Origin: Tetramitus jugosus
Lineage: Eukaryota; Protista; Heterolobosea
Assembly: GCA_937625935.1 (NCBI GenBank)
Contig: OW569344.1
Location: 496,001-560,000, forward strand
Reading direction: 5' to 3'
DNA: 64,000 bases
Shown here: positions 2 through 27,081 of the stretch, in pieces
Position numbering within the stretch: position 1 is the stretch's first letter
Layout of the letters: each line of letters opens with the position of its first letter
Notes under the pieces: generated by a model
Databases searched by the model: none
What the model saw: only the letters and a program-made list of their open reading frames with translations
Told to the model about the DNA's origin: nothing
Translations under genes and position numbers: made by a program

Positions 2-3000
2 GAGCACAAACTCGTCAAGATGGGCAAGAAGATTCACCTGTATAGAGCTTCCATGAGATCTCACATATTCCTGAAAGCATTCCCTGCGAACCAAGGTGTG
101 TGGACATCTTCTACGAGTCCCTTGATTTATCTAAATCCTGCAGCCATGAGTACGAGCAAGGAAAGAATTCCTGTCGCTTCTCAATGGCAGATTCTGGATG
201 AAAAGCGTAGACCGCTAAAGATTCATTTCGACTATAGTCGTTCCCAGGGTACTGCTTTCCGTGAAGTCATGTTGTATGTTCCTTACTGGATAATGAACCA
301 TACCGAGCAACCACTGTTAATCAGAGAACTCCATGATATTTCAGCCGGCCAAGAGCAGACAAGAGCAGACAAATCTAAAGCTACACAATCCACTTCAATC
401 ACCCCAACCAAGGTGGATGAAGACGAAAAGCTTTCAATGGAACAGTACCAAAAGGATTTGTTAATGTTTTCATTCCTGTGTGATAGTCCTGAAGAGCAGG
501 CAAAACAGAGAATCGCTATTAAGGTTAATGATACTCAATACTCTGAATTTTTCAGAATTGAGAAGGTCGGTGTCAGTGGCAACTTGTCGCTGCACTCCAA
601 ATCGCAGCGATACTCCATTGGTTTCCATACTTCATTGTGTCCTGGTAAGTTTAACAGGACCAAACTTGTCACTTTCTACTCAAGATATATGATTGTCAAT
701 AAGACCGAAAAAGATCTCGTATTTAGACAATCGAACACCAAATCGGCGTACTGTGTCAAAAAGAATGAGAGAGTGCCATTTTATTGGAGAGAGCTAGACA
801 TTCTTGAACCTCGATTGCAATTCAATATTGCTGAGTCTAACCTTGATTGGTCAGCAGCGTTCCCTCTCAATACATTGGACGAAATGTCAATTAAGTTGAA
901 TGGCAGCTCTGCGAATACTACTGGTATTGCTCCACCATCTGGACATATCCTCTCTGTTAATATTACAGAAAAGCAAGGTTGTATTCTTGTTACTGTCAAA
1001 GAACCCTTGGAGCCACCATACCTCATCGACAATGAACTCGAGTGCGATGTCGTAATTAACCAACAAAACTCGACACAATATTGGAGTATTCCAAGCTCGT
1101 CGAAAGTTGCTTACGCCTGGGATAGTTTATCAGGAATGCAGAAATTAAGTTTCCAATTCTTGAACTGCCCTCCAAAAGACTTGGACATTAATGAAGTGAC
1201 TCAGAAACCAATATTCTGGCAGATGCAAAATGCAAAGGATCGATCTCAATCAAGACGAGTCAAGATAACAGTGTCTGCCCAAGGTCCGACAAGAGTTGTT
1301 CGTATCAGTGATGCAAGAAGTGCTGAAACAGAAGAGAAGGACAAGAAGAGGGATGAAGAAGAATTGACCTTCTTCCTTGACACTAAGCTCTCTGGTGTAG
1401 GTCTTTCACTGATCGATAACTACCCAAGGGAGATATGTTATGTCTCCATCAGCGATATTAGATTTAGGCAGAGTTCAAGTGAGAGTAATATGTACCTGGA
1501 GTTTAGATGCCTAGGTGTTCAGATTGATAATATGTTACGAGAGGCTGCATTCCCTGTTGCCTTTGCTCCTGTCAACAAACATACATACGGTGAGGATACC
1601 CACGACAATACGTTATCAAAACCTTTCCTGCATTTCAGTATGTGTAAGTCACTGAAAGAGAGTGATGATAGCATCAATTTGTTCAGATATCTATCATTCA
1701 ATCTGCAAGAAGCAACCATTGAAATCGACTACACATTTGTCGAGAATGTGATCAATCTCGTTGATGAGTTAAGCGCAGAAGATACCAGCAGAGTTGACTC
1801 TGTTGTGGAGAGTGTGGTGGACAAAGATATTGTATCGGTAACCGATATGCTCAAGGTAGTTGTCGATAATAGTGCTGAGAGTCATCAAAAGTACTACTTC
1901 GAGGACTTTGAACTTCATCCTGTCAGAGTCAATCTAACATTCAAGTTTACACAACTCGGACAAGATGAAATGGACGAAGATTCTCAGTCTTTGAAGGGCA
2001 GATTGTATAATATGATGAAATCTCTCGGTTTCTTGACTAATGTTGATGATGCTCCAATTTGTCTCAACGCTCTGTTGTTGAGACATCCATTACTCACAAA
2101 GGAAGCACTCCAAGATCGTATTATGAAGCATTATACTCGTTGTGGAACCTATGAACTGTATAAGATTGTCGGTTCACTAGAATTGATTGGTAATCCAGTA
2201 GGCTTGTTCAATGATTTGACAACAGGTGTCAAAGATTTATTCTATGAGCCTGCAAGTGCTCTTACAAGAAGTCCTGAAGAATTCTCTCGTGGTCTAGCCA
2301 AAGGCTCTCTCAGCTTGTTGTCCCACAGTATCCATGGTACTTTTAACACTGCTTCGAAAATCACGGGAACCATCGGCAAAGGTGTATCTATGCTCACTCT
2401 AGATGATAATTATGTGAAGAGAAGAGAACGAAGTTCTGCAAGAAAGGCAAGAGGTGTTAAAGAAGGTCTTCTTGATGGAACCGAAGCGTTGGCAAAGGGA
2501 ATTTATGAAGGAGCTGTGGGTGTAATTGCTCAACCGGTAAAGGGTGCCAAGAGTGAAGGATTCTTTGGAGCCATGAAAGGAATCGGCAAGGGCATCATCG
2601 GTCTTCCTACCAAACCAATTTCTGGTATTGTAGACTTTGCTTCAAAAACAACTGAGGGAATATCGAATATTGGAACAGTACATGTAGAACGTAAGCGTAA
2701 GACCAGAGTATTTAGAAATGATGGACTCCTCATCCTCTACAGCGAGCAAGATGCTTTTGCTGCTGATTTGATGTATGAAGTGAATGAAGGCTCCTACATG
2801 AGAAAGAGTAATCAGATGACAATACAAGCAAACATGGAGCCAGAAAGGTCGTTGTACTATATGCCAAATAGAGATGATAATTGCGTGTTCCTGATTACAA
2901 GCAGAAGTGTTCTGAAAATCAGGATCCAGAATAAGACGATTCAATGGATGGTGGACGTCAAGCAAATCAAGGCTGTGAAGAGTGGACCAAATGATGAAAT

Positions 3001-3124
3001 TATCATTACCTACAGGGAGAGTAATAAGGACGTAGAAAGAAAGATGTACTACAAAGATCCAGACTATCGCAAACGTTTCAAAGAACAACTGCTCTCCGTC
3101 CAGCAGGCTCAATTTGGAAAGTAA
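2..3124 (+). CDS. VPS13: VPS13-family lipid transfer protein, C-terminal part (VAB/SHR-BD repeats, VPS13_C/ATG2_C, PH-like end); 5' end lies outside the window
   Basis: Frame is open from position 2. Motifs LYVPYWIMNHT, PPYLIDNE, YAWD, GVGLSLID, QIDN, FELHPVRVNLTF, GSLELIGNPVGLF, GVKDLFYEP, and Gly-rich amphipathic repeats (GIGKGIIGLPTKPISG). Confidence 0.95.
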   Translation, partial: EHKLVKMGKKIHLYRASMRSHIFLKAFPANQGVWTSSTSPLIYLNPAAMSTSKERIPVASQWQILDEKRRPLKIHFDYSRSQGTAFREVMLYVPYWIMNHTEQPLLIRELHDISAGQEQTRADKSKATQSTSITPTKVDEDEKLSMEQYQKDLLMFSFLCDSPEEQAKQRIAIKVNDTQYSEFFRIEKVGVSGNLSLHSKSQRYSIGFHTSLCPGKFNRTKLVTFYSRYMIVNKTEKDLVFRQSNTKSAYCVKKNERVPFYWRELDILEPRLQFNIAESNLDWSAAFPLNTLDEMSIKLNGSSANTTGIAPPSGHILSVNITEKQGCILVTVKEPLEPPYLIDNELECDVVINQQNSTQYWSIPSSSKVAYAWDSLSGMQKLSFQFLNCPPKDLDINEVTQKPIFWQMQNAKDRSQSRRVKITVSAQGPTRVVRISDARSAETEEKDKKRDEEELTFFLDTKLSGVGLSLIDNYPREICYVSISDIRFRQSSSESNMYLEFRCLGVQIDNMLREAAFPVAFAPVNKHTYGEDTHDNTLSKPFLHFSMCKSLKESDDSINLFRYLSFNLQEATIEIDYTFVENVINLVDELSAEDTSRVDSVVESVVDKDIVSVTDMLKVVVDNSAESHQKYYFEDFELHPVRVNLTFKFTQLGQDEMDEDSQSLKGRLYNMMKSLGFLTNVDDAPICLNALLLRHPLLTKEALQDRIMKHYTRCGTYELYKIVGSLELIGNPVGLFNDLTTGVKDLFYEPASALTRSPEEFSRGLAKGSLSLLSHSIHGTFNTASKITGTIGKGVSMLTLDDNYVKRRERSSARKARGVKEGLLDGTEALAKGIYEGAVGVIAQPVKGAKSEGFFGAMKGIGKGIIGLPTKPISGIVDFASKTTEGISNIGTVHVERKRKTRVFRNDGLLILYSEQDAFAADLMYEVNEGSYMRKSNQMTIQANMEPERSLYYMPNRDDNCVFLITSRSVLKIRIQNKTIQWMVDVKQIKAVKSGPNDEIIITYRESNKDVERKMYYKDPDYRKRFKEQLLSVQQAQFGK

Positions 3125-3133
3125 ACTAATTAT

Positions 3134-6100
3134 TTAATTGTTCAGAAGATCACTCTTAATCTTGTTCACCATCTTACTCATTGCATCTTCGCCCTTGCCA
3201 GCAGATGTGATCGTTTGTCCCTTCTTCTGGCTGGCCTGATTCTTCTTTTGATTTTTGAGTTGTTCGGCCTTCGTTGCCTGAATACACTTGTCGAACTTTA
3301 GGAGGAATTCAGAGATTATGCCAAAAAACTCAGTGGTTTCAGTCTTCTCAATTTCTTGATCCTTGTATGCGTAATACTTCAGCAATGCATGATATTCCTT
3401 CTTAACAGCGGCGAGTCCTAGTTCAATCTGATCACACTTCTTTCTCGAATCGTTGTAAAATTGAGTAGCAATCTTCATGAATGGATCGTCATCGTCCACG
3501 TGTTCCTTTACCTTTTTTACCTGGGCTTTAAACTTATTGAATCCAGCCGCTATTGTTCCAATTCCCTTTGTCAAACTGTCCAAACTTGTCCCCTTAATTT
3601 CATGAACAATTTTGAGATCATCAGACATATTGACTAGATCTGGTCTGGAGGAGACAGCAGTATCAATGGCGTATTGCAATAAGCTGATTTTGTTTGTCTT
3701 GTCCTTTGTTGCATCAATCTTTGGCAACACTTTTAAGTGAAAACCATCGGCTTGTCCTTTCGGCGTATCTCCATTGAGATAATTACCCATAGACAGTAGA
3801 TAGCCGAGCAAGTACGGAAAGTCTTTGTTATTCTTGATCAACTCGATAGCCTTTTTCATGGAATCTAATGGTGATATCATCGTGGAAACATTATTCTCAA
3901 ATTCGTGCATAAACACCCAGCAATCTAGTCTGGTCGCGAATTCAGGTATAGTAATAATCATAAGCATGTACTTCTCGGCCTCCGTGAAATTCTTCATTGG
4001 TTTGTTCTTGTACTTGTCCTTGAATTCTTTCATATCTTCGTTGGTAGGCATATTTTGGATGATGATATCAATTTGATCTTTTGAAAGAGACTTACTATCA
4101 AGCTCAAGAATAGCCTGTTGAAGTTTGGCAGGTTTAGGTAATTTCCTCAACATAATAGATAGATTTTGAAATAACTTTGCATCAATAAGAGGGGCATTTT
4201 CAGGAGCTACCTCTTTCTTTTCAACTCTTTTCGCAGTAGGTGGAGCCTCTCTCTTAGCAAACATACTCTCAAACTCCTTCATATCAAACTCTCCCTCCTT
4301 GACTCCTGTCCATATTGTCCCTGCGCCTTGGGGTGTGTTTGTTAAGATTCTATCCCAAAACAAACCCTTCATCTTTCTCTGCGGTACGATCTTGGGTTTT
4401 GTAGGTTGTCCTGGTCCTCCAAACCCTCCTGGCCTGAATCCGCCCATCATAGGTGGAGGCATTCCGCCCATCATCGGTGGAGGCATTCCGCCCATCATCG
4501 GTGGAGGTGGCATTCCACCGCCCATCATAGGAGGTGGAGGAGGTCCACTCATCATAGGAGGAAGCATGCCACCCATCATTGGAGGTGGTGGTGGAGGCAT
4601 ACCGCTCATTGGGGGTGGTGAAGACATGATGCCACCCATGGGAGGAGGTGGAGGAGGTAGGCCACTCATCATAGGAGGTAGTGGAGGCATAATACTGCCC
4701 ATCATTGGAGATGGCGGAGGCATACCAGCCATTGGTGTTGGTGGAGGAATACTACCAGTAATTGGGGAGAGTAGAGGCATGCCACTTATCGGAGGAGGTA
4801 TTCCACTACCATTCATAGGTGGTGGAGGAGGTATGTTTCCACCCATTGGTGGAGGAGGTATTGCACCGATAATCATACCATTACTTGAAGAAGGTACTGT
4901 ACCTCCAATTATTATTGGAGGTGGGGGTGATGATGTACTTGATGGTGAGGATACACTCACTTCGGGTGCCATAGTAATGTTTGTTGTCTTGTTGCTACCG
5001 ATTTGTTGATTTGTTGGAGTCTTAGTAGCTGGCTCTGTTGTGACTTGAGACCCAGTCATTGGTGGAATAAAGTCGTCACCATCAAAATCGGGTGGTGGAG
5101 GCGGAGGTACATAGTCATCCTCTTCATGTACGAAATGAGCTTGTCTCTCAAGTCGCTCTTGCAATTCCTTCACTTTATCTCTCAATTTTTGCATTTCTAA
5201 CGTGATCTCAGGACTAATCCTCTCATCTTTCCCTTCTTCCTCATCGTCTGAACTGTCAAATGGATCGCTTGGCTTTATAGACTGTTTACGTTGGACAACA
5301 GTTGGCTTTCTTGATGGTATTAAATTATTGAACTCCCGGTTGCTCATAAACCGATGTACAAGTTCTCTTCTTGTTTTCTGTAACATTTCATACTCACTTG
5401 ATAACTCTAGTTCCATCTTATCATACATGCTCAGATCGATGACCTCCCCTGCGATTAGATCACCTGACCTGTCTCCTATCCTTGATGTTGGATAGCTTTT
5501 TGGAAGGTATCCACACTGTATTGACATCATTTCCAGGGTTTCATGACACCTACTCAACTCAGCTCTCATCAACTTAATGAGTGGCTGCTGTCTCTGGTAT
5601 TCAAATAATTTTTCTTGAGTTTGTTCATACTTTACTGTCATTCGCTCCCATTCCTTCTTGTACTTTTCAGATTCATACCACGACCGAGGAATTGAATAAT
5701 TTGAAATCTTTTGCAATATATGAAGCTGGTCCTTAATCGCTGGATATTCAGATTCATTTAATCCCTTCAAAATAGGTCTCAACTCTACTTTTTCCCATTG
5801 GAAAATTAACTTCTTTTTCTTTTCCTCTGTTTTGCTCTTACTCAGCATAATATTCATGACAGCAAGGGTATTTACTTGTACATCAAGATCTCCACTTCGT
5901 AACAAGTGCATAAAGTTCTCATATGGCTCCTTTGTTTTAGTCTTGGAAATGGACTCTTTGGCCGCTTCCTTGACTAAAGCGAGACCATTCTCAAGATAAC
6001 TTACGAATACAAGTAGCAATTCGAGCGCATTTTTGTAAATTGTTAAACCATACTCTTGTGTGGTATCTGTCAGATTATAGATCTCTCCAACAATTCTTGG

Positions 6101-9743: not shown

Positions 9744-11948
9744 ATGTCATCTGACCAGAGCAGCAATGCCACTCCGACTAATACTACTACTACCAACAAC
9801 AACAACAACAACAACAATAGCAAAAAGCGTAAAAACATGAATGATAACAACACGAAAAACAATCGAACGTTGATGGACTATTGGGCCAAAAAGTATCATC
9901 AGAGCAGAGAATTAGAAATCAAATCATTGATGATGATGGATTCTACCACTTCTTCCTCTTCCTCGTCATCATCCTCAACATCAGATGAAAAGAGACCCAA
10001 ATTCAATGATTTACTCCTCACAAACAACAATAACAAGCATAATAACAAGTATAATGATAGCAGTAGCAATAGTAAGAATCCAATCGAAGTTGATGAAGAC
10101 ATTTCCATTGTCGATGATCATCCCATTGGAGTTTCATCCTCTAATCAAGATTACAACAAGTGGCACAAGAAATCAAACAAAATTCAACCCAACAACAACA
10201 ATACCAACAATACCAACAATGCTAATACTAATACTAATAATAATACTAATAATACTAATAGTGATGATCGATGGGACTCGAAACATGTAAAATTACCTTG
10301 TTCTTCACACAATACTTTTCTAGTCACTTCTCCCTATCATTCATCTGGAAACTCACTCACCAAATCAACCTCGAAATCAAAGTGGTACCTCATTCAGACA
10401 CTGCTCAAACAACCAATATCCAACGTGTATGAACTGCAAGATCTCATTCAATCCATGAAGAATTGTGGCAATAGTGGACAACAGACATCAATGGACATGA
10501 CCATGTTGTTTGATTTCTTTCAATCGTATATTCCGAGAGAGAGTCGAGATGAGTTTTTTGCGAGGATTTTGCCCTGGATGCAAAAAATGGCACTTCGATT
10601 GCCAGATTTATTGCCCCGTTCCGTACCATTGCTCAAGAAACAGAGAGAATCGAGTGTGGAGTTGACTGCAGAGCAAGTGGCGTGTCTCATGTGTCATGCA
10701 TTCTTTTGTACGTTTCCACGAAGAGACAAATTGAACAATAGAAGAGATCACGAGTACTTTACGTTCCCAAACATTAATTTTACAGAGTTGTATCGTGGAA
10801 CGAGATCGGTGGATACGGAGAAGATGATGGCAGCCAAATTGCAGACTATTGTCCAATATTTTGATCATGTTTCGCGGCACGAGAGTGAACTGAGTGCGAG
10901 AACCATTGGATTTCATCGTCGTGTAATTGCACTGTACAATGGATCGAAGAGTAAATCGACAGAGTATCAACAAGTGCTAGACTACAAGGATGGCGATAGT
11001 GAAAAAGAGGATGATGAAACAGAAGAGGAGAACCCCATATTGACCATGTGGAAGAATAGCACTGAAAAATTGATCAGTTGCAAGGTTTCCCTGGATGGAA
11101 CCATCGAAGATGAGTTGAATTCGAGTCAAGTCGATTTTGCAAACAAGTTTATCGGTGGAGGAGTCATTGGAAGGGGCTGTGTTCAGGAAGAGATTCGATT
11201 CTTGATCAACACAGAATGTATCATATCGAGACTATTTACAGAGGAGTTTGATGACAATGAGTGCATGATTATTCGCGGTGCCAGGCGGTTCAGTAAGTAT
11301 ACGGGATATGCAGACACGTATCGATTCGATGGACCATACGATGGACCAGTGTCAGACAAGGAAGAGATTGTGTGCATTGACGCGTTGAACTTTGTTGATC
11401 GAACCATGTTTCGGTCAACCACAGATCAGTATAAACCTGAGTGGATACAGCGAGAGTTGAATAAGGCCTATTGCTCATTCCAGAAGCTATCGTATGACGC
11501 TTACAATCATGATATGAAGATTGCAACGGGGCATTGGGGAGGAGGAGCATTCAGTGGTGATCGTGAACTCAAGGCTATCATTCAACTCATGGCCGCTTCG
11601 CAAGCCAAACGAGAGGCAGTGTCCTATTTTGCTTATGCCGACGAAGATTTTGTGAAAAAGTTTGATCCCATGTACAGTAACTTGGTCTGCATTGAGGCAA
11701 CAGTAGGCGAGCTGTACACATGCTTAATGGAATATCGAGCTAAGAGAGTGCAAGCCAGACAAAAACAAAAGTCAATAGGCATCATTGGTCGAGTGCCATC
11801 AGTATTGGATTTTGTGTTTGGTTGGTTTGTTGCTGAAACCAACGATCCCTTTGATGAGATACCTCCAACAGAGCCACTCACACAGCCAGAGACAATCTTG
11901 GACACCAGCACAACTGAAAATGCAGAAACAATCCATGAAAAACTATAA
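9744..11948 (+). CDS. PARG: Poly(ADP-ribose) glycohydrolase
   Basis: WDSKHVKLP, AFFCTFP, QVDFANKFIGGGVIGRGCVQEEIRF (GGG-x6-QEE signature), FSKYTGY, RELNKAYC, ATGHWGGGAFSGD. Asn-rich N-terminus. Confidence 0.97.
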   Translation: MSSDQSSNATPTNTTTTNNNNNNNNSKKRKNMNDNNTKNNRTLMDYWAKKYHQSRELEIKSLMMMDSTTSSSSSSSSSTSDEKRPKFNDLLLTNNNNKHNNKYNDSSSNSKNPIEVDEDISIVDDHPIGVSSSNQDYNKWHKKSNKIQPNNNNTNNTNNANTNTNNNTNNTNSDDRWDSKHVKLPCSSHNTFLVTSPYHSSGNSLTKSTSKSKWYLIQTLLKQPISNVYELQDLIQSMKNCGNSGQQTSMDMTMLFDFFQSYIPRESRDEFFARILPWMQKMALRLPDLLPRSVPLLKKQRESSVELTAEQVACLMCHAFFCTFPRRDKLNNRRDHEYFTFPNINFTELYRGTRSVDTEKMMAAKLQTIVQYFDHVSRHESELSARTIGFHRRVIALYNGSKSKSTEYQQVLDYKDGDSEKEDDETEEENPILTMWKNSTEKLISCKVSLDGTIEDELNSSQVDFANKFIGGGVIGRGCVQEEIRFLINTECIISRLFTEEFDDNECMIIRGARRFSKYTGYADTYRFDGPYDGPVSDKEEIVCIDALNFVDRTMFRSTTDQYKPEWIQRELNKAYCSFQKLSYDAYNHDMKIATGHWGGGAFSGDRELKAIIQLMAASQAKREAVSYFAYADEDFVKKFDPMYSNLVCIEATVGELYTCLMEYRAKRVQARQKQKSIGIIGRVPSVLDFVFGWFVAETNDPFDEIPPTEPLTQPETILDTSTTENAETIHEKL
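9794..9817 (+). repeat. (AAC)n coding microsatellite (poly-Asn)
   Basis: Directly visible. Similar tracts occur at about 10190-10260 and 61298-61333. Confidence 0.85.
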
Positions 11949-23765: not shown

Positions 23766-24599
23766 TTAAGATTGTGAGTTGGCTGGGATTTTGTTGGGTG
23801 TGGCGACTTGTTGTAAGAAGACATCTCCCACCACATACAGCTTATCCTTCATGTAGTGCTGGAAAATGGGAGACTTTACAAACACATCAAACGGTCCTTC
23901 ACTCAATTGTTTAGCTACATTTCGAACAGCATCATCAAACAACCGACAAGGGATCATGGTCTCGGAACAAAAACTGTCAAATTCTCCAATAATGTCCTGT
24001 CGAATGGCTTCGCTAAGCTCAATTCTGTTCTCTGCATCTCGTCTAATGTAATCTTTCATGATAAGCTTTGCAAGGTAAAACCGATTCTGAGGAGATGTTT
24101 TTGAATGAAATTGTCTCACATGCTCCATAAAATCTAACTGTTTCTGATATGTGGAGCTCCACTCCTTGTTCTTGGACACAAAGTGAGTAAAAAGACCTCG
24201 AAAGTCTTCCAACAAGAATAATCGGTCAAACAAGTAGTTGTAACTGGCAATTAACTTGCTCCTTGGACTATTGTCCCTGTCAATAGGTAGTTGATTCATG
24301 GTTGGTTGTCTTCTGGATATCGTCTTTCTGTCAACTTCCTTCTCGTTCGTTGAGTGATCAAGTTGCTGTGAGGAATCTCTGGTTAAGGTTGGTTGTGATG
24401 GTGGAGGTGATAGTGGTTGTTCGGTGATGGATGAGATTGGCAATGTAGCTGGATGCGTTGTGTCGATTGTCATCTGATTCTTGATGATCCTGCTATCATC
24501 CGGTTTGTTCACAATGGTGAAATAGTCGTCATGATCTTGATGGAACTCTTCATTGCTCCCTCCTTCACCTCCTTGTTTTGATGTATGAGAATTGCCCAT
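23766..24599 (-). CDS. RGS-domain protein, probably N-myristoylated
   Basis: MGNSHTS N-terminus; LDFMEHVRQF, AKLIMKDYIRRDAENRIELS, LFDDA, PFDVFVKSPIF. Confidence 0.85.
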   Translation of the reverse strand: MGNSHTSKQGGEGGSNEEFHQDHDDYFTIVNKPDDSRIIKNQMTIDTTHPATLPISSITEQPLSPPPSQPTLTRDSSQQLDHSTNEKEVDRKTISRRQPTMNQLPIDRDNSPRSKLIASYNYLFDRLFLLEDFRGLFTHFVSKNKEWSSTYQKQLDFMEHVRQFHSKTSPQNRFYLAKLIMKDYIRRDAENRIELSEAIRQDIIGEFDSFCSETMIPCRLFDDAVRNVAKQLSEGPFDVFVKSPIFQHYMKDKLYVVGDVFLQQVATPNKIPANSQS

Positions 24600-24754
24600 G
24601 ATTGATGTATCGTATCAGTTCTATTTGAATGCTTTGTATTTGCTGGTATGAGATTGAGGGAAAGAAAATAATTTATTTTTTGTAAATTTTGGGTTGACTC
24701 CAAAAATACAGTTTGTTGTTCGAAAGCTCATCATGACACGCGCAAGAAATTCAC

Positions 24755-25837
24755 TCATAGAGCAGTCAGTGGTGTCCGTAAGTCCTTCAAATCGTTTGAT
24801 TTCTTTTGGAATGATGAGACTATACATAGTGTCAGGAATACACAAACAACTCCAACGACTGAACCCATGAAGAAGAAGCCAAATGAAAAAACTATTATCC
24901 TCTTTCTTGGACTTGTCTGTCCTTCCAATGTAACAAATGCACACTCTTTCGATTCAGGCGTATCGGCGCACACAATGTACTTTAATGTGGCGTAGTCATC
25001 CACACAAGTGATAGGAGGAAGAGCAACACCAGTCTCGTCGAATCTCCGCTTCACGTCTTCCTTCAGCTTCAATATAGATCCTGATGTACAAGTCTCCCCT
25101 ATACTATCATTCTTCAACAGTAAGATCTGTAGGGACGTGATATTGGGCGTTGATAGATTCGGTAATTCAAAGCCTGCAAAGAAGGAAGCAGTCTTATAAG
25201 CGGTGCCATGATGTGCACTCAACAAAACGTGAACATCGCCTCGTGCATTTGCTGCAAATCGCCGACTACTCTGTGCCCAGAACGATACCATTGCACCAAG
25301 TGTCTCATTTGAGCTCAGAACCTGCCCAAACGGACACAACTCCTTGTAATCTACACCGTTCACACAATCCAAACTCGTCGAATTATCTTCACCCGTACAT
25401 CCACAAAAGGTTAAACGATTCACAGCTCGGCCCAGCACCGTGTCTTCCAACGTGACAAAATTCTGTGGGAAATTATTGGAGAGCACATGAGCAACGCGAT
25501 CCGTGTTACTCCAGAACAGTGATTTATCTCTAGGTGCCATGAGCAACTCATTGGGCAGCTCATTGAAGAATGGTTCAAAATCAGCAAGAGACACACTCGA
25601 GGAAGCCTTGGATACCCATACAGAGGCAAAATTTTCATAAATTCTTGCACAGTCAACTGCTGTGGACGATACATTGGTCATGACATCTGTGTTGACGATG
25701 ATTGCCTCAGAACACCTTCCCACGACAATTTCTCTCAAGTGAGGTGTCGTAGCTACCGTTATGCCGCCAAGCACAAGTGACGAATGCAACAGGAGGAGAA
25801 AAAGCAGAGGGGCAAGAAGAATTTTGGTCGAAAACAT
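24755..25837 (-). CDS. ADP-ribosyl cyclase / NAD glycohydrolase, CD38/CD157 family; signal peptide plus C-terminal TM
   Basis: TTPHLREIVVGRC, VDC, SLFWS, FVTLEDTVLG..LTFCG, SFWAQSSRRFA..ARGDVHVLL, SFFAGFELPNL, ETCTSGSI..L; Cys pattern. Confidence 0.9.
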   Translation of the reverse strand: MFSTKILLAPLLFLLLLHSSLVLGGITVATTPHLREIVVGRCSEAIIVNTDVMTNVSSTAVDCARIYENFASVWVSKASSSVSLADFEPFFNELPNELLMAPRDKSLFWSNTDRVAHVLSNNFPQNFVTLEDTVLGRAVNRLTFCGCTGEDNSTSLDCVNGVDYKELCPFGQVLSSNETLGAMVSFWAQSSRRFAANARGDVHVLLSAHHGTAYKTASFFAGFELPNLSTPNITSLQILLLKNDSIGETCTSGSILKLKEDVKRRFDETGVALPPITCVDDYATLKYIVCADTPESKECAFVTLEGQTSPRKRIIVFSFGFFFMGSVVGVVCVFLTLCIVSSFQKKSNDLKDLRTPLTAL

Positions 25838-26043
25838 TCACAATGATTTTCTTTCAACAACAGCAACGTGAACAAAAAATGACTGGATAGTGGTGTCGGC
25901 CGTAACGTCAGAAGCTTATCCTGGGCACTTGAGCTTGTTTGTTTGAGGGAATTGCAATTTTGACCCCGATTTTTGATTGAGCACGAAAGGCTGCCCGAAT
26001 TTGTGAAAAAACCGAGATTTATATAAATTCTTCGGAGTAATTT

Positions 26044-27081
26044 TTACGCGGCAGCGGACCGTTCTTCAATGTACTGAATGTCAGAGGTCAACATGGATGT
26101 TTCGTCGGATGATGGAGCAGACTGTTCTAAGATTTCTTTTTTGAATTCCTTTTGGTGTTTGGGAGATGTTCTGGGGAAGCTCAAATGGATGAGGAGGTAC
26201 TGCACGAGCAACAAAATACATTGCAACAAGGTCACAATGAGGAAGCTCCAATCCTGTTTTCCCTTTAACGATGTCTTCTGGATCACCATTGTTTGGATCA
26301 TGTTGGCAATTGTTCTGAAAAAGAAGTAAATGTTACACGAGCAAACCAAGGTCTGTGCCCTGTACACGAGCTTCTTACCAGAGGACGCTTGGTGTGACAC
26401 TGTGCATGTAAATGAGATGGAACATATGAGAATTAGAATGGCATTACACGTGATACCGGCATCAAATATCTTATCTGCCACAAATTTAAACTTGATTGAT
26501 CCTGGTGTGTGAGTTGACCGAGCTGCGTTGTAATGACTACCTGAGAAGTAGTAGACATCAGCGGCTACCTTTGGAACGATCGTAATGGCAATCAAAGTTA
26601 GTTCAGCGATTACTAACAAGTACTCTACCCTTCTGCCGGACTCTTTCTTGTTGGGAATTCTATTTACCACCATCTGAACCAAGGAGGAACAGAACACACG
26701 AGCAATTCCGAGCAGGATCTCATTCACCAATACGACAGAGCAAAATTCTATACTTAGCAATAATAGGCGATAGAGTTGGATGGGTGTTCGATTCAACGCA
26801 TGAGGTATCAGTAGTACACTCAAACTTCCTGCCAATATCAACAATTCCAATACACATATGCATAACGCTGCGATACTTGCTCTTATCTTAATTCGATTGT
26901 ACACTCTAGCGAGACTTTTCTCCTTGGATAACTCTTTTCTTTCGCTCCAATTGCCCCACAGTGTTTGCAAGAACAGGAGAAAGAGTATCAAGATGAACAA
27001 GAGATTGATACATGTGAGTACCAAAGCAGGTATTAGAGATCCTTCCATTAATGTTGTTGAAATGTTTTTCTGAACCTTCAT
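26044..27081 (-). CDS. Seven-TM membrane protein (GPCR-like)
   Basis: About seven hydrophobic segments and a polar C-terminal tail. No family motif recognised. Confidence 0.6.
   Translation of the reverse strand: MKVQKNISTTLMEGSLIPALVLTCINLLFILILFLLFLQTLWGNWSERKELSKEKSLARVYNRIKIRASIAALCICVLELLILAGSLSVLLIPHALNRTPIQLYRLLLLSIEFCSVVLVNEILLGIARVFCSSLVQMVVNRIPNKKESGRRVEYLLVIAELTLIAITIVPKVAADVYYFSGSHYNAARSTHTPGSIKFKFVADKIFDAGITCNAILILICSISFTCTVSHQASSGKKLVYRAQTLVCSCNIYFFFRTIANMIQTMVIQKTSLKGKQDWSFLIVTLLQCILLLVQYLLIHLSFPRTSPKHQKEFKKEILEQSAPSSDETSMLTSDIQYIEERSAAA

Follow-up and report, generated by a model that had tools for sequence, protein, structure and literature searches.

The described enzymes closest to the gene reported here are the ADP-ribosyl cyclases (ARC) of animals, which convert NAD into messengers that release calcium. 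The Aplysia cyclase is a soluble granule protein with five disulfides, CD38 is a type II membrane protein with a sixth disulfide, and CD157/BST-1 is held by a glycosylphosphatidylinositol (GPI) anchor. Sea-urchin ARCs act in the lumen of acidic organelles, and two-pore channels (TPCs) are almost universal in eukaryotes; to our knowledge, every characterised synthesising enzyme of the animal type comes from an animal. At stake is which enzyme makes NAADP (nicotinic acid adenine dinucleotide phosphate) and cyclic ADP-ribose (cADPR) outside animals, and how old such signalling is. Here we describe an ARC gene in a 64,000-nucleotide stretch of the heterolobosean amoeba Tetramitus jugosus (assembly GCA_937625935.1, contig OW569344.1). 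This stretch, below called the window, is the 496-560 kb interval of contig 1 in the assembly. The gene is a member of the CD38/CD157/Aplysia-cyclase family and, as judged from alignments and a structural model, its catalytic site is intact.

The family is also known outside animals. ARC is a toxin domain (Tox-ARC) of bacterial polymorphic toxins, with homologues in many bacteria, fungi, Capsaspora, choanoflagellates and metazoa (Zhang et al. 2012, PMC3482391), and it has been proposed that animals and fungi each acquired it from bacteria on separate occasions (PMC3482391; also PMC3417536). Tox-ARC belongs to the same superfamily as the amoeba ARC and shares its signature ([ST][DE], S, E; PMC3482391). 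However, Tox-ARC is a C-terminal cassette on secreted toxins (type V, VI and VII secretion systems, T5SS, T6SS and T7SS; RHS or filamentous haemagglutinin repeats) with an Imm74 partner. The amoeba ARC, in contrast, is a 360-aa protein standing alone behind a predicted signal peptide of the eukaryotic kind. Its predicted disulfides are of the animal type, a pattern scan of prokaryotic genomes found no close relative, and instead of Imm74 or Imm63 genes it has an RGS gene and a multi-pass membrane protein gene as neighbours. An oomycete survey reported no CD38 homologue (PMC4820453). Our literature search, with most subscription journals outside its scope, returned no relevant report pairing ADP-ribosyl cyclase with Naegleria, Heterolobosea, Excavata, Amoebozoa, Physarum or Acanthamoeba, and the Pfam family name or accession appeared there in one unrelated paper only. 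The preliminary description of this gene, made from the sequence, had treated the characterised family as an animal affair. That premise is outdated, as ARC outside animals was reported in 2012 and a protist-type set including Physarum is found here. The gene is therefore new for its lineage, but not for non-animals. The amoeba ARC adds a lineage to the record of a well-known enzyme family and is not a new kind of system.

The Pfam profile Rib_hydrolayse (PF02267) matches residues 31-299 over its full length (1-241 of 241), with an E-value of 1.8e-49 and a score of 168.8 bits (cut-off 25). NCBIfam, a prokaryote-oriented library, gave nothing for this protein. Among all PDB sequences, phmmer finds human BST-1/CD157 as the best match (1isf, E 1.5e-26), together with the Aplysia cyclase entries 3zwm and 1lbe at about 4e-25 (3.5e-25 at best) and some thirty CD38 entries at about 1e-17. 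An AlphaFold2 (AF2) model, built from a 25-homologue alignment, has a mean predicted local distance difference test score (pLDDT) of 86.5 and a predicted TM-score (pTM) of 0.77. All of the 50 best Foldseek matches of this model in PDB are CD38, Aplysia cyclase or BST-1 (target TM-score 0.77-0.84, E down to 9e-20), i.e., the predicted structure has the two-lobed ARC fold. The CD38/CD157-family identity proposed earlier is thus borne out by profile, solved-structure sequences, predicted fold, residue mapping and genomic context, and the comparison of a predicted structure with CD38, one of the checks suggested at that time, came out in its favour.

The active site can be mapped onto both CD38 and the Aplysia cyclase. 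From printed alignments and indexing, the motif FWS at 108-110 contains W109/S110, equivalent to W125/S126 of CD38 and W77/S78 of Aplysia. E131/D132 within TLEDT correspond to E146/D147 of CD38 and E98/D99 of Aplysia, W187 to W189 and W140, and S191 to S193 and S144. The block FFAGFELPNL at 219-228 holds E224, which aligns with the catalytic E226 of CD38 and E179 of Aplysia in all three printed alignments. Alignment thus found in the amoeba protein each of the equivalents that had been read from the sequence alone, i.e., TLED(T), W125, E146/D147, W189, S193 and E226. K215 is found at the position of Aplysia R170.

CD38 and the Aplysia cyclase differ at two of the mapped positions. N140 corresponds to N107 of Aplysia and D155 of CD38, and F219/F220, where F219 lies five residues before E224, correspond to F174/F175 of Aplysia and T221/F222 of CD38. 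F174 steers the substrate of the Aplysia cyclase into a cyclising fold, and the mutation F174G shifts this cyclase towards an NADase (Liu et al. 2009, PMC2785692). T221 of CD38 disfavours cyclisation, and N107 versus D155 is among the differences between the two sites (PMC2785692). F219 and N140 match Aplysia F174 and N107 and not CD38 T221/D155, which points to a site of the cyclase type at these two positions and may bear on the product ratio. The Aplysia cyclase (1lbe, 3zwm) also shares the remaining catalytic set and the ELPNL block, with TM-scores of 0.78-0.82 at about 27% sequence identity. CD157 (1isf) and CD38 (1yh3) have the same fold, TLEDT, Trp, Ser and Glu, and all are ecto or lumenal glycoproteins, as is predicted for the amoeba protein; however, T221/D155 of CD38 favour hydrolysis.

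The ectodomain contains ten cysteines (42, 63, 145, 147, 158, 168, 250, 278, 290 and 299), and two more lie in the membrane helix. Cysteine columns were scored in an alignment of 132 homologues. C42/C63, C145/C168, C250/C278 and C290/C299 fill conserved columns and are predicted to form the four core disulfides of the family, which in CD38 numbering are C67-C82, C160-C173, C254-C275 and C287-C296. In this column analysis, C145 is the equivalent of C160, and C168 aligns with its partner C173; the context of C168, VDYKELCP, resembles INYQSCP, which we take to be the context of C173 in CD38. A pairwise phmmer alignment with Aplysia, in which C158 was mapped to C125 and C168 to C131, was overruled by the multiple alignment.

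What is absent is the fifth disulfide of the animal enzymes, C99-C180 in CD38 or C51-C131 in Aplysia. The C99 column contains Cys in 94 homologues and the C180-equivalent column, between C173 and W189, in 91, while the amoeba ARC has Cys in neither. Both are Cys in 92 of the 123 scorable homologues and neither is in 27 (21 of them protist-type); only four are discordant, so the pair is lost as a unit. C147 and C158, on the other hand, are additional compared with Aplysia and lie in the lengthened loop between C145 and C168, where the pLDDT drops below 50 at 151-154. Among the aligned homologues these two are common only to a trio of the amoeba protein and its relatives P0002 and P0154, described below. 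The earlier reading, in which the C99-C180 pair was absent and an extra Cys pair sat in an inserted loop, agrees with the columns of the 132 sequences.

The amoeba ARC also differs from the described animal enzymes in its predicted topology. A hydrophobic leader at residues 1-24 is followed by the start of the conserved domain, and the ectodomain carries six N-x-S/T sequons. The most hydrophobic stretch, at about 314-343 (19-residue mean 2.65), precedes 17 charged or polar residues, and AF2 places a long C-terminal helix at 310-359. We predict a type I membrane protein consisting of a signal peptide, an ectodomain, a C-terminal transmembrane (TM) helix and a 17-residue tail. This topology, unlike that of type II CD38, had been proposed in the preliminary description, and both the hydropathy and the AF2 helix support it. 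The charged tail after the TM helix argues against a GPI-anchor signal; judged from the sequence, the hydrophobic end without a charged tail that marks a CD157-style signal is absent. Neither the N-terminal anchor of a CD38-style type II protein nor the sixth disulfide was found. Whereas the Aplysia cyclase is soluble and CD157 GPI-anchored, the amoeba ARC is thus predicted to have a TM anchor with a cytosolic tail. A C-terminal TM helix and short tail also occur in most protist-type homologues and in Nematostella XP_048588917 (P0009). As the latter ends in a strongly hydrophobic helix and a short tail, the C-terminal anchor is not unique to protists.

The open reading frame (ORF) opens with ATG, which is the first start codon to follow the in-frame stop before it. 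A 1271-nt contig from the Joint Genome Institute (JGI; L003) encodes a protein that is 99% identical and is colinear with 25933-24664 at 98.5% nucleotide identity, with 95 nt before the coding sequence (CDS) and 93 nt after it. Neither this contig nor the metatranscriptome contigs show intron joints, and together with the ORF list they confirm the frame of 360 aa that had been described as intact and intronless. A six-frame Pfam scan of the genome (26.35 Mb, 56 contigs) finds one copy of the family. The coordinates are listed in Table 1.

Table 1. Location of the ARC gene, its parts and the candidate channel genes (ARC features in window positions, channels in contig positions).
Feature	Location	Strand	Basis and remarks
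ADP-ribosyl cyclase CDS	24755..25837	-	360 codons + stop, complete, intronless; ORF list, PF02267 match, single genomic copy
Minimum transcript-like extent	24664..25933	-	CDS plus about 95 nt on its upstream and about 90 nt on its downstream side; contig L003, soil contig 24712-25898
Signal peptide, residues 1-24 (predicted; cleavage site inferred)	25766..25837	-	Kyte-Doolittle stretch 4-30 directly before TTPH..GRC
ARC catalytic ectodomain, residues 31-299	24941..25747	-	Pfam match, phmmer to 1isf/3zwm/CD38, AF2 pLDDT mostly >90, Foldseek
TLEDT signature, residues 129-133	25439..25453	-	E131/D132 = CD38 E146/D147 = Aplysia E98/D99; alignments and indexing
Codon GAA of catalytic Glu E224	25166..25168	-	= CD38 E226 / Aplysia E179; sequence read and alignments
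Inserted loop, residues 146-160, with extra C147 and C158	25358..25402	-	Alignment columns; lowest ectodomain pLDDT at 151-154; pairing inferred only
C-terminal TM helix, residues about 314-343	24809..24898	-	Hydropathy maximum 2.65; AF2 helix 310-359; same in most protist-type homologues
Short charged tail, residues 344-360, cytoplasmic (predicted)	24758..24808	-	Sequence indexing
TPC-like gene	contig 25 141718-143933 (L013:1219-1668 and 1755-3434)	+	Two ORFs, gap about 87 nt
IP3R-like open frame	contig 2 114684-121802	-	Pfam matches
IP3R-like open frame	contig 17 279465-286247	+	Pfam matches

The gene is covered by soil metatranscriptome contigs from four RNA runs of four studies. One of these contigs (X3 record 14) spans 24712-25898, and an oligo-dT library covers 24819-25354. 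The genes beside ARC fall on separate metatranscriptome contigs and the intergenic gaps are uncovered. This evidence consists of assembled contigs, so DNA carry-over remains formally possible; however, the contig ends coincide with the gene borders and an RNA origin is therefore favoured, and we take the gene to be expressed. Codon differences between the window and L003 are synonymous in 12 cases and non-synonymous in 4, two of the latter in the signal peptide, and the gene is under purifying selection. The window itself is gene-dense, with long uninterrupted ORFs and eukaryotic products such as VPS13, formin, PARG, malate synthase, transporters and an RGS protein. Compared with 26 window ORFs, the ARC gene has a third-position GC content (GC3) of 0.438 (0.425 ± 0.034 in the ORFs) and a total GC of 0.448 (0.421 ± 0.015), and its codon-frequency correlation of 0.55 is slightly below the 0.58-0.90 of the others. 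Its composition is roughly that of the host. The cytosolic HSP90 encoded in the genome has its nearest named matches in Willaertia (77%), Naegleria (74-75%) and Acrasis (74%), with plant proteins also at 74-75% and unnamed environmental sequences at 81-93%, which agrees with a heterolobosean origin without proving it.

Relatives were sought by two protein searches. A word-indexed search identified only four proteins, and an exhaustive search of 1.84 billion cluster representatives gave 335 matches with E ≤ 1e-3, of which 166 reached ≤ 1e-10 and 5 reached ≤ 1e-30. The five closest are a 99% identical allele, P0002, the P0005/P0154 cluster, a protein of the slug Arion and one of the crinoid Antedon. 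P0002 is 42% identical to the amoeba ARC, lies on a 44.6-kb JGI contig of 34.5% GC and keeps all catalytic residues. The P0005/P0154 cluster is about 35% identical and comes from the unannotated NCBI assembly GCA_016850925.1; P0154 (L004:4580-5602) has retained its signal peptide and TM anchor as well as every cysteine. Two cNMP-binding ORFs are found just upstream of the P0154 gene, and for another neighbour on L004, of 531 aa, the amoeba genome gave no match. After these two close relatives, the best named matches are molluscs, echinoderms and cnidarians at 33-37% identity, and the further named matches include these groups, one annelid and Physarum polycephalum (EukProt). A profile search for named protist relatives gave nine matches and no additional named ones. 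Naegleria, Willaertia and Acrasis proteins are present in the searched collection but none is among the five matches at E ≤ 1e-30; a close orthologue in these genera is therefore unlikely, while a distant one is possible.

A quick tree of 113 rows joins the query with P0002 and P0154 (SH-aLRT 97), inside a 25-row group (support 95) with Physarum and otherwise unnamed sequences. The ten members of this group that were looked up all come from metagenomes or metatranscriptomes only, including Tara-type marine runs, and none from an animal genome. In a careful tree of 65 rows the trio has a support of 100/98, and 23 protist-type rows are split from 42 animal-type rows at 80/87. This split is present in 78% of the bootstrap trees, in a bootstrap that had not fully converged (correlation 0.945). 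The phylogeny called for in the preliminary description thus groups the amoeba ARC with non-animal sequences, and it is not placed among the animal ones. The tree is unrooted and bacterial Tox-ARC sequences are not among its rows; therefore, ancient vertical descent and transfers among protists are not separable.

Independently of the tree, the loss of C99-C180 tracks the split between protist-type and animal-type sequences. The cnidarian and echinoderm sequences, including that of Nematostella with its C-terminal helix, keep the pair and lie on the other side of the 80/87 split. The protist-type set has in common a signal peptide, a TTP..GRC start, TLE[DE]T, the catalytic Glu (kept in nearly all of the 25 sequences), the loss of C99-C180 and mostly a C-terminal TM helix with a short tail. 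Physarum (EukProt P006533, P0041) and the rest of this set share the signal peptide, the Glu and the disulfide loss with the amoeba ARC, but they are only 25-31% identical to it and, outside the trio, have no extra C147/C158 pair. Based on these sequences, a membrane-anchored protist-type ARC branch exists well outside animals, and its split from the animal enzymes has moderate support. This branch, which includes Physarum, has one disulfide less and is mostly type I, is apparently undescribed.

Two members of the protist-type set are found in particular surroundings. On an environmental eukaryotic contig, the gene of P0059 (L014:1450-2541, minus strand) adjoins a DUF4231/SLATT_1 gene (L014:3040-4044, plus strand); that family has been linked to membrane effectors that nucleotides activate in conflict systems. 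This adjacency might be a hint that some protists use ARC in an immune-type role. P0052 (L005:3168-4172) has no TM anchor and is encoded on a 45-kb contig of 67% GC (JGI 3300056825) that also carries SH3 and tyrosine-kinase-like genes; a sulfotransferase-like ORF upstream ends 4 nt inside the P0052 ORF. The source of this contig is possibly a holozoan protist.

Candidate downstream channels were searched for in the same genome. Two large ORFs, of 2,552 and 2,431 aa, belong to the IP3R/ryanodine receptor (RyR) superfamily, with Ins145_P3_rec, RYDR_ITPR and Ion_trans matches. The RyR-repeat domain was not found in the genome, which is weak evidence of absence as there was no positive control genome; the two large channels therefore look IP3R-like. 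The two TPC-like ORFs on contig 25 were searched as separate pieces. The 149-aa ORF matches two-pore channels only among PDB entries (TPC3 26-144, TPC1 73-206), and the 559-aa ORF, 87 nt downstream, aligns in one stretch with mouse TPC1 219-705 (E 4e-63) and also with TPC3 and plant TPC1. These alignments indicate a two-exon TPC gene with a short intron. The TRPM-type LSDAT domain (LSDAT_euk) was likewise not found, again weak evidence in a search with no positive control genome. Of the channels that the preliminary description proposed to look for, a TPC and two IP3R-like channels are thus present, but RyR-repeat and TRPM2-type domains were not found. The genome also encodes three TIR_2 proteins and one AD-domain (LSM12-like) ORF. 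On contig 13 (429306-433069, plus strand), four Ion_trans repeats are distributed over two adjacent open frames of 933 and 750 aa, which are probably one gene of a four-domain voltage-gated cation channel, split by an intron or a frameshift.

We consider it likely that the amoeba gene encodes a catalytically competent ADP-ribosyl cyclase/NAD(P) glycohydrolase made as a type I membrane glycoprotein, for which we infer activity, product ratio and location. The signal peptide would take the disulfide-bonded catalytic domain into the secretory pathway, so that this domain would end up either outside the cell or on the lumenal side of endocytic or acidic compartments, with one C-terminal helix as the anchor and the 17-residue tail in the cytosol. 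By homology, E224 would stabilise the ribosyl oxocarbenium intermediate after the departure of nicotinamide, while W109, S110, E131, N140, W187 and S191 would position the substrate. The bulky F219, as F174 in Aplysia, would favour the fold-back of adenine that leads to cADPR, and with NADP and nicotinic acid at acid pH the same site could produce NAADP by base exchange. In this biochemical mechanism, drawn by homology, we have fair confidence.

The physiological role is more tentative. Messenger synthesis is a possibility to which we give somewhat less than an even chance; it is slightly ahead of NAD scavenging, i.e., breakdown or salvage of NAD at the surface or in phagosomes, and the remainder goes to other roles. 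If the enzyme signals, a route from NAADP to TPC appears better supported by the parts identified in the genome than cADPR to RyR or ADP-ribose to TRPM2. It is more plausible than the RyR route, given the TPC gene and the lack of any RyR-repeat match in the genome.

Several observations weigh against a catalytically competent, messenger-producing ARC. Its catalytic activity is assigned by homology, and Lys replaces R170 of Aplysia. The catalytic domain would lie on the membrane side opposite to cytosolic NAD, the same topological puzzle as in CD38. Neither RyR-repeat nor TRPM (LSDAT) domains were found in the genome, and the distribution is patchy, with only two close homologues among 15 billion proteins. 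In one of these, P0154, Val stands in place of the catalytic Glu, and the TLEDT motif reads NIRDT (Arg at the E146 equivalent). P0154 is probably a pseudoenzyme, and the ARC fold can therefore persist without catalysis. It can be asked whether the amoeba protein, too, works mainly without catalysis, as a receptor at the surface or in adhesion, a role that has been proposed for CD157 and for some of the biology of CD38, given that P0154 keeps fold, cysteines and anchor without the catalytic Glu and the E146 equivalent. However, the query and P0002 keep every catalytic residue, as nearly all of the protist-type sequences keep the Glu, and we regard such a receptor as highly improbable.

The same enzyme could instead serve nutrition, as an ecto or phagosome-lumen NADase that splits NAD(P) from ingested bacteria or soil water into nicotinamide and ADP-ribose, which the cell would then take up and salvage, without a messenger role. 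An outward or lumenal catalytic domain with glycosylation sites and disulfides fits this, and the organism is, by its relatives, a soil phagotroph found in soil metatranscriptomes. A patchy, dispensable-looking distribution also suits an accessory metabolic enzyme, and the RyR and TRPM2-type targets were not found in the genome. The site, however, has the cyclase-favouring Phe and Asn and not the hydrolase-favouring Thr and Asp of CD38, and TPC and IP3R-like channels are present. We regard a purely nutritional enzyme as possible but rather unlikely. Still less probable is an enzyme of conflict or immunity, one that either depletes NAD or produces a nucleotide signal to trigger a membrane effector, as for TIR and Tox-ARC, in place of housekeeping Ca2+ signalling. 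The bacterial family members are polymorphic toxins, P0059 adjoins its SLATT_1 gene and the phyletic pattern is patchy, but no SLATT, TIR or other conflict gene lies beside ARC in the window, the neighbours of the two close homologues differ, and a lumenal or extracellular domain cannot deplete the cytosolic NAD of its own cell.

A foreign gene, brought in by animal contamination or by recent transfer from an animal or a bacterial Tox-ARC toxin, would agree with the best named matches after the two close relatives being animals at 33-37%, with ARC domains in bacterial toxins and with the slightly deviating total GC and codon usage. However, the gene is embedded in a contig at least 560 kb long, its neighbours are eukaryotic genes with few introns, as is typical of the genome, and its GC3 is within the range of the window ORFs. 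It is never nested in an animal group in the trees, but sits with non-animal sequences that also are without C99-C180, and its identity to any animal sequence is at most 37%. No relative was found in 185,579 prokaryotic species by a pattern scan that detects close relatives only. Genome context and tree position rule out animal contamination, which the preliminary description had named as a possible refutation, and the scan with the protein found nothing in favour of a recent bacterial origin. A foreign source of any of these kinds is very improbable, and a resident amoeba ADP-ribosyl cyclase remains the preferred reading.

Two genes on the same strand flank ARC. At 26044-27081 (minus strand) lies a gene whose 345-aa product, a multi-pass membrane protein, has about 6-7 hydrophobic segments, no Pfam match and language-model features that are weakly THH1/TOM1/GPR137-like seven-transmembrane (7TM), and at 23766-24599 (minus strand) one for a 277-aa RGS-domain protein (E 1.8e-11). 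A conserved 7TM-ARC-RGS trio was considered and rejected: homologues of both neighbours are absent beside the ARC genes of L001, L004 and L005, thus the linkage is not conserved. The gene neighbourhoods of the query and its two closest ARC homologues are unrelated. A gene for the ADP-ribose-metabolising PARG (PARG_cat_N and PARG_cat_C, E 4e-69) is located at 9744-11948 on the plus strand, 13 kb from the ARC gene; this proximity is probably a coincidence.

It can be speculated, though we think it doubtful, that the ancestor shared by Discoba, Amoebozoa and Opisthokonta already possessed ARC, a type I membrane enzyme that worked in acidic or endocytic compartments and supplied NAADP (and cADPR) to two-pore and IP3R-like channels. 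ARC would then not be a holozoan or animal acquisition, and the enzymes of animals, which have the extra disulfide, would represent a single derived branch. If this is true, the amoeba holds a minimal, genetically simple pathway of one ARC, one TPC and two IP3R-like channels. If the enzyme is only a digestive NADase, the finding is an ordinary extension to a new lineage. With a single-copy expressed ARC, a TPC and IP3R-like channels, the amoeba would be a tractable place to ask whether NAD-derived Ca2+ messengers predate animals.

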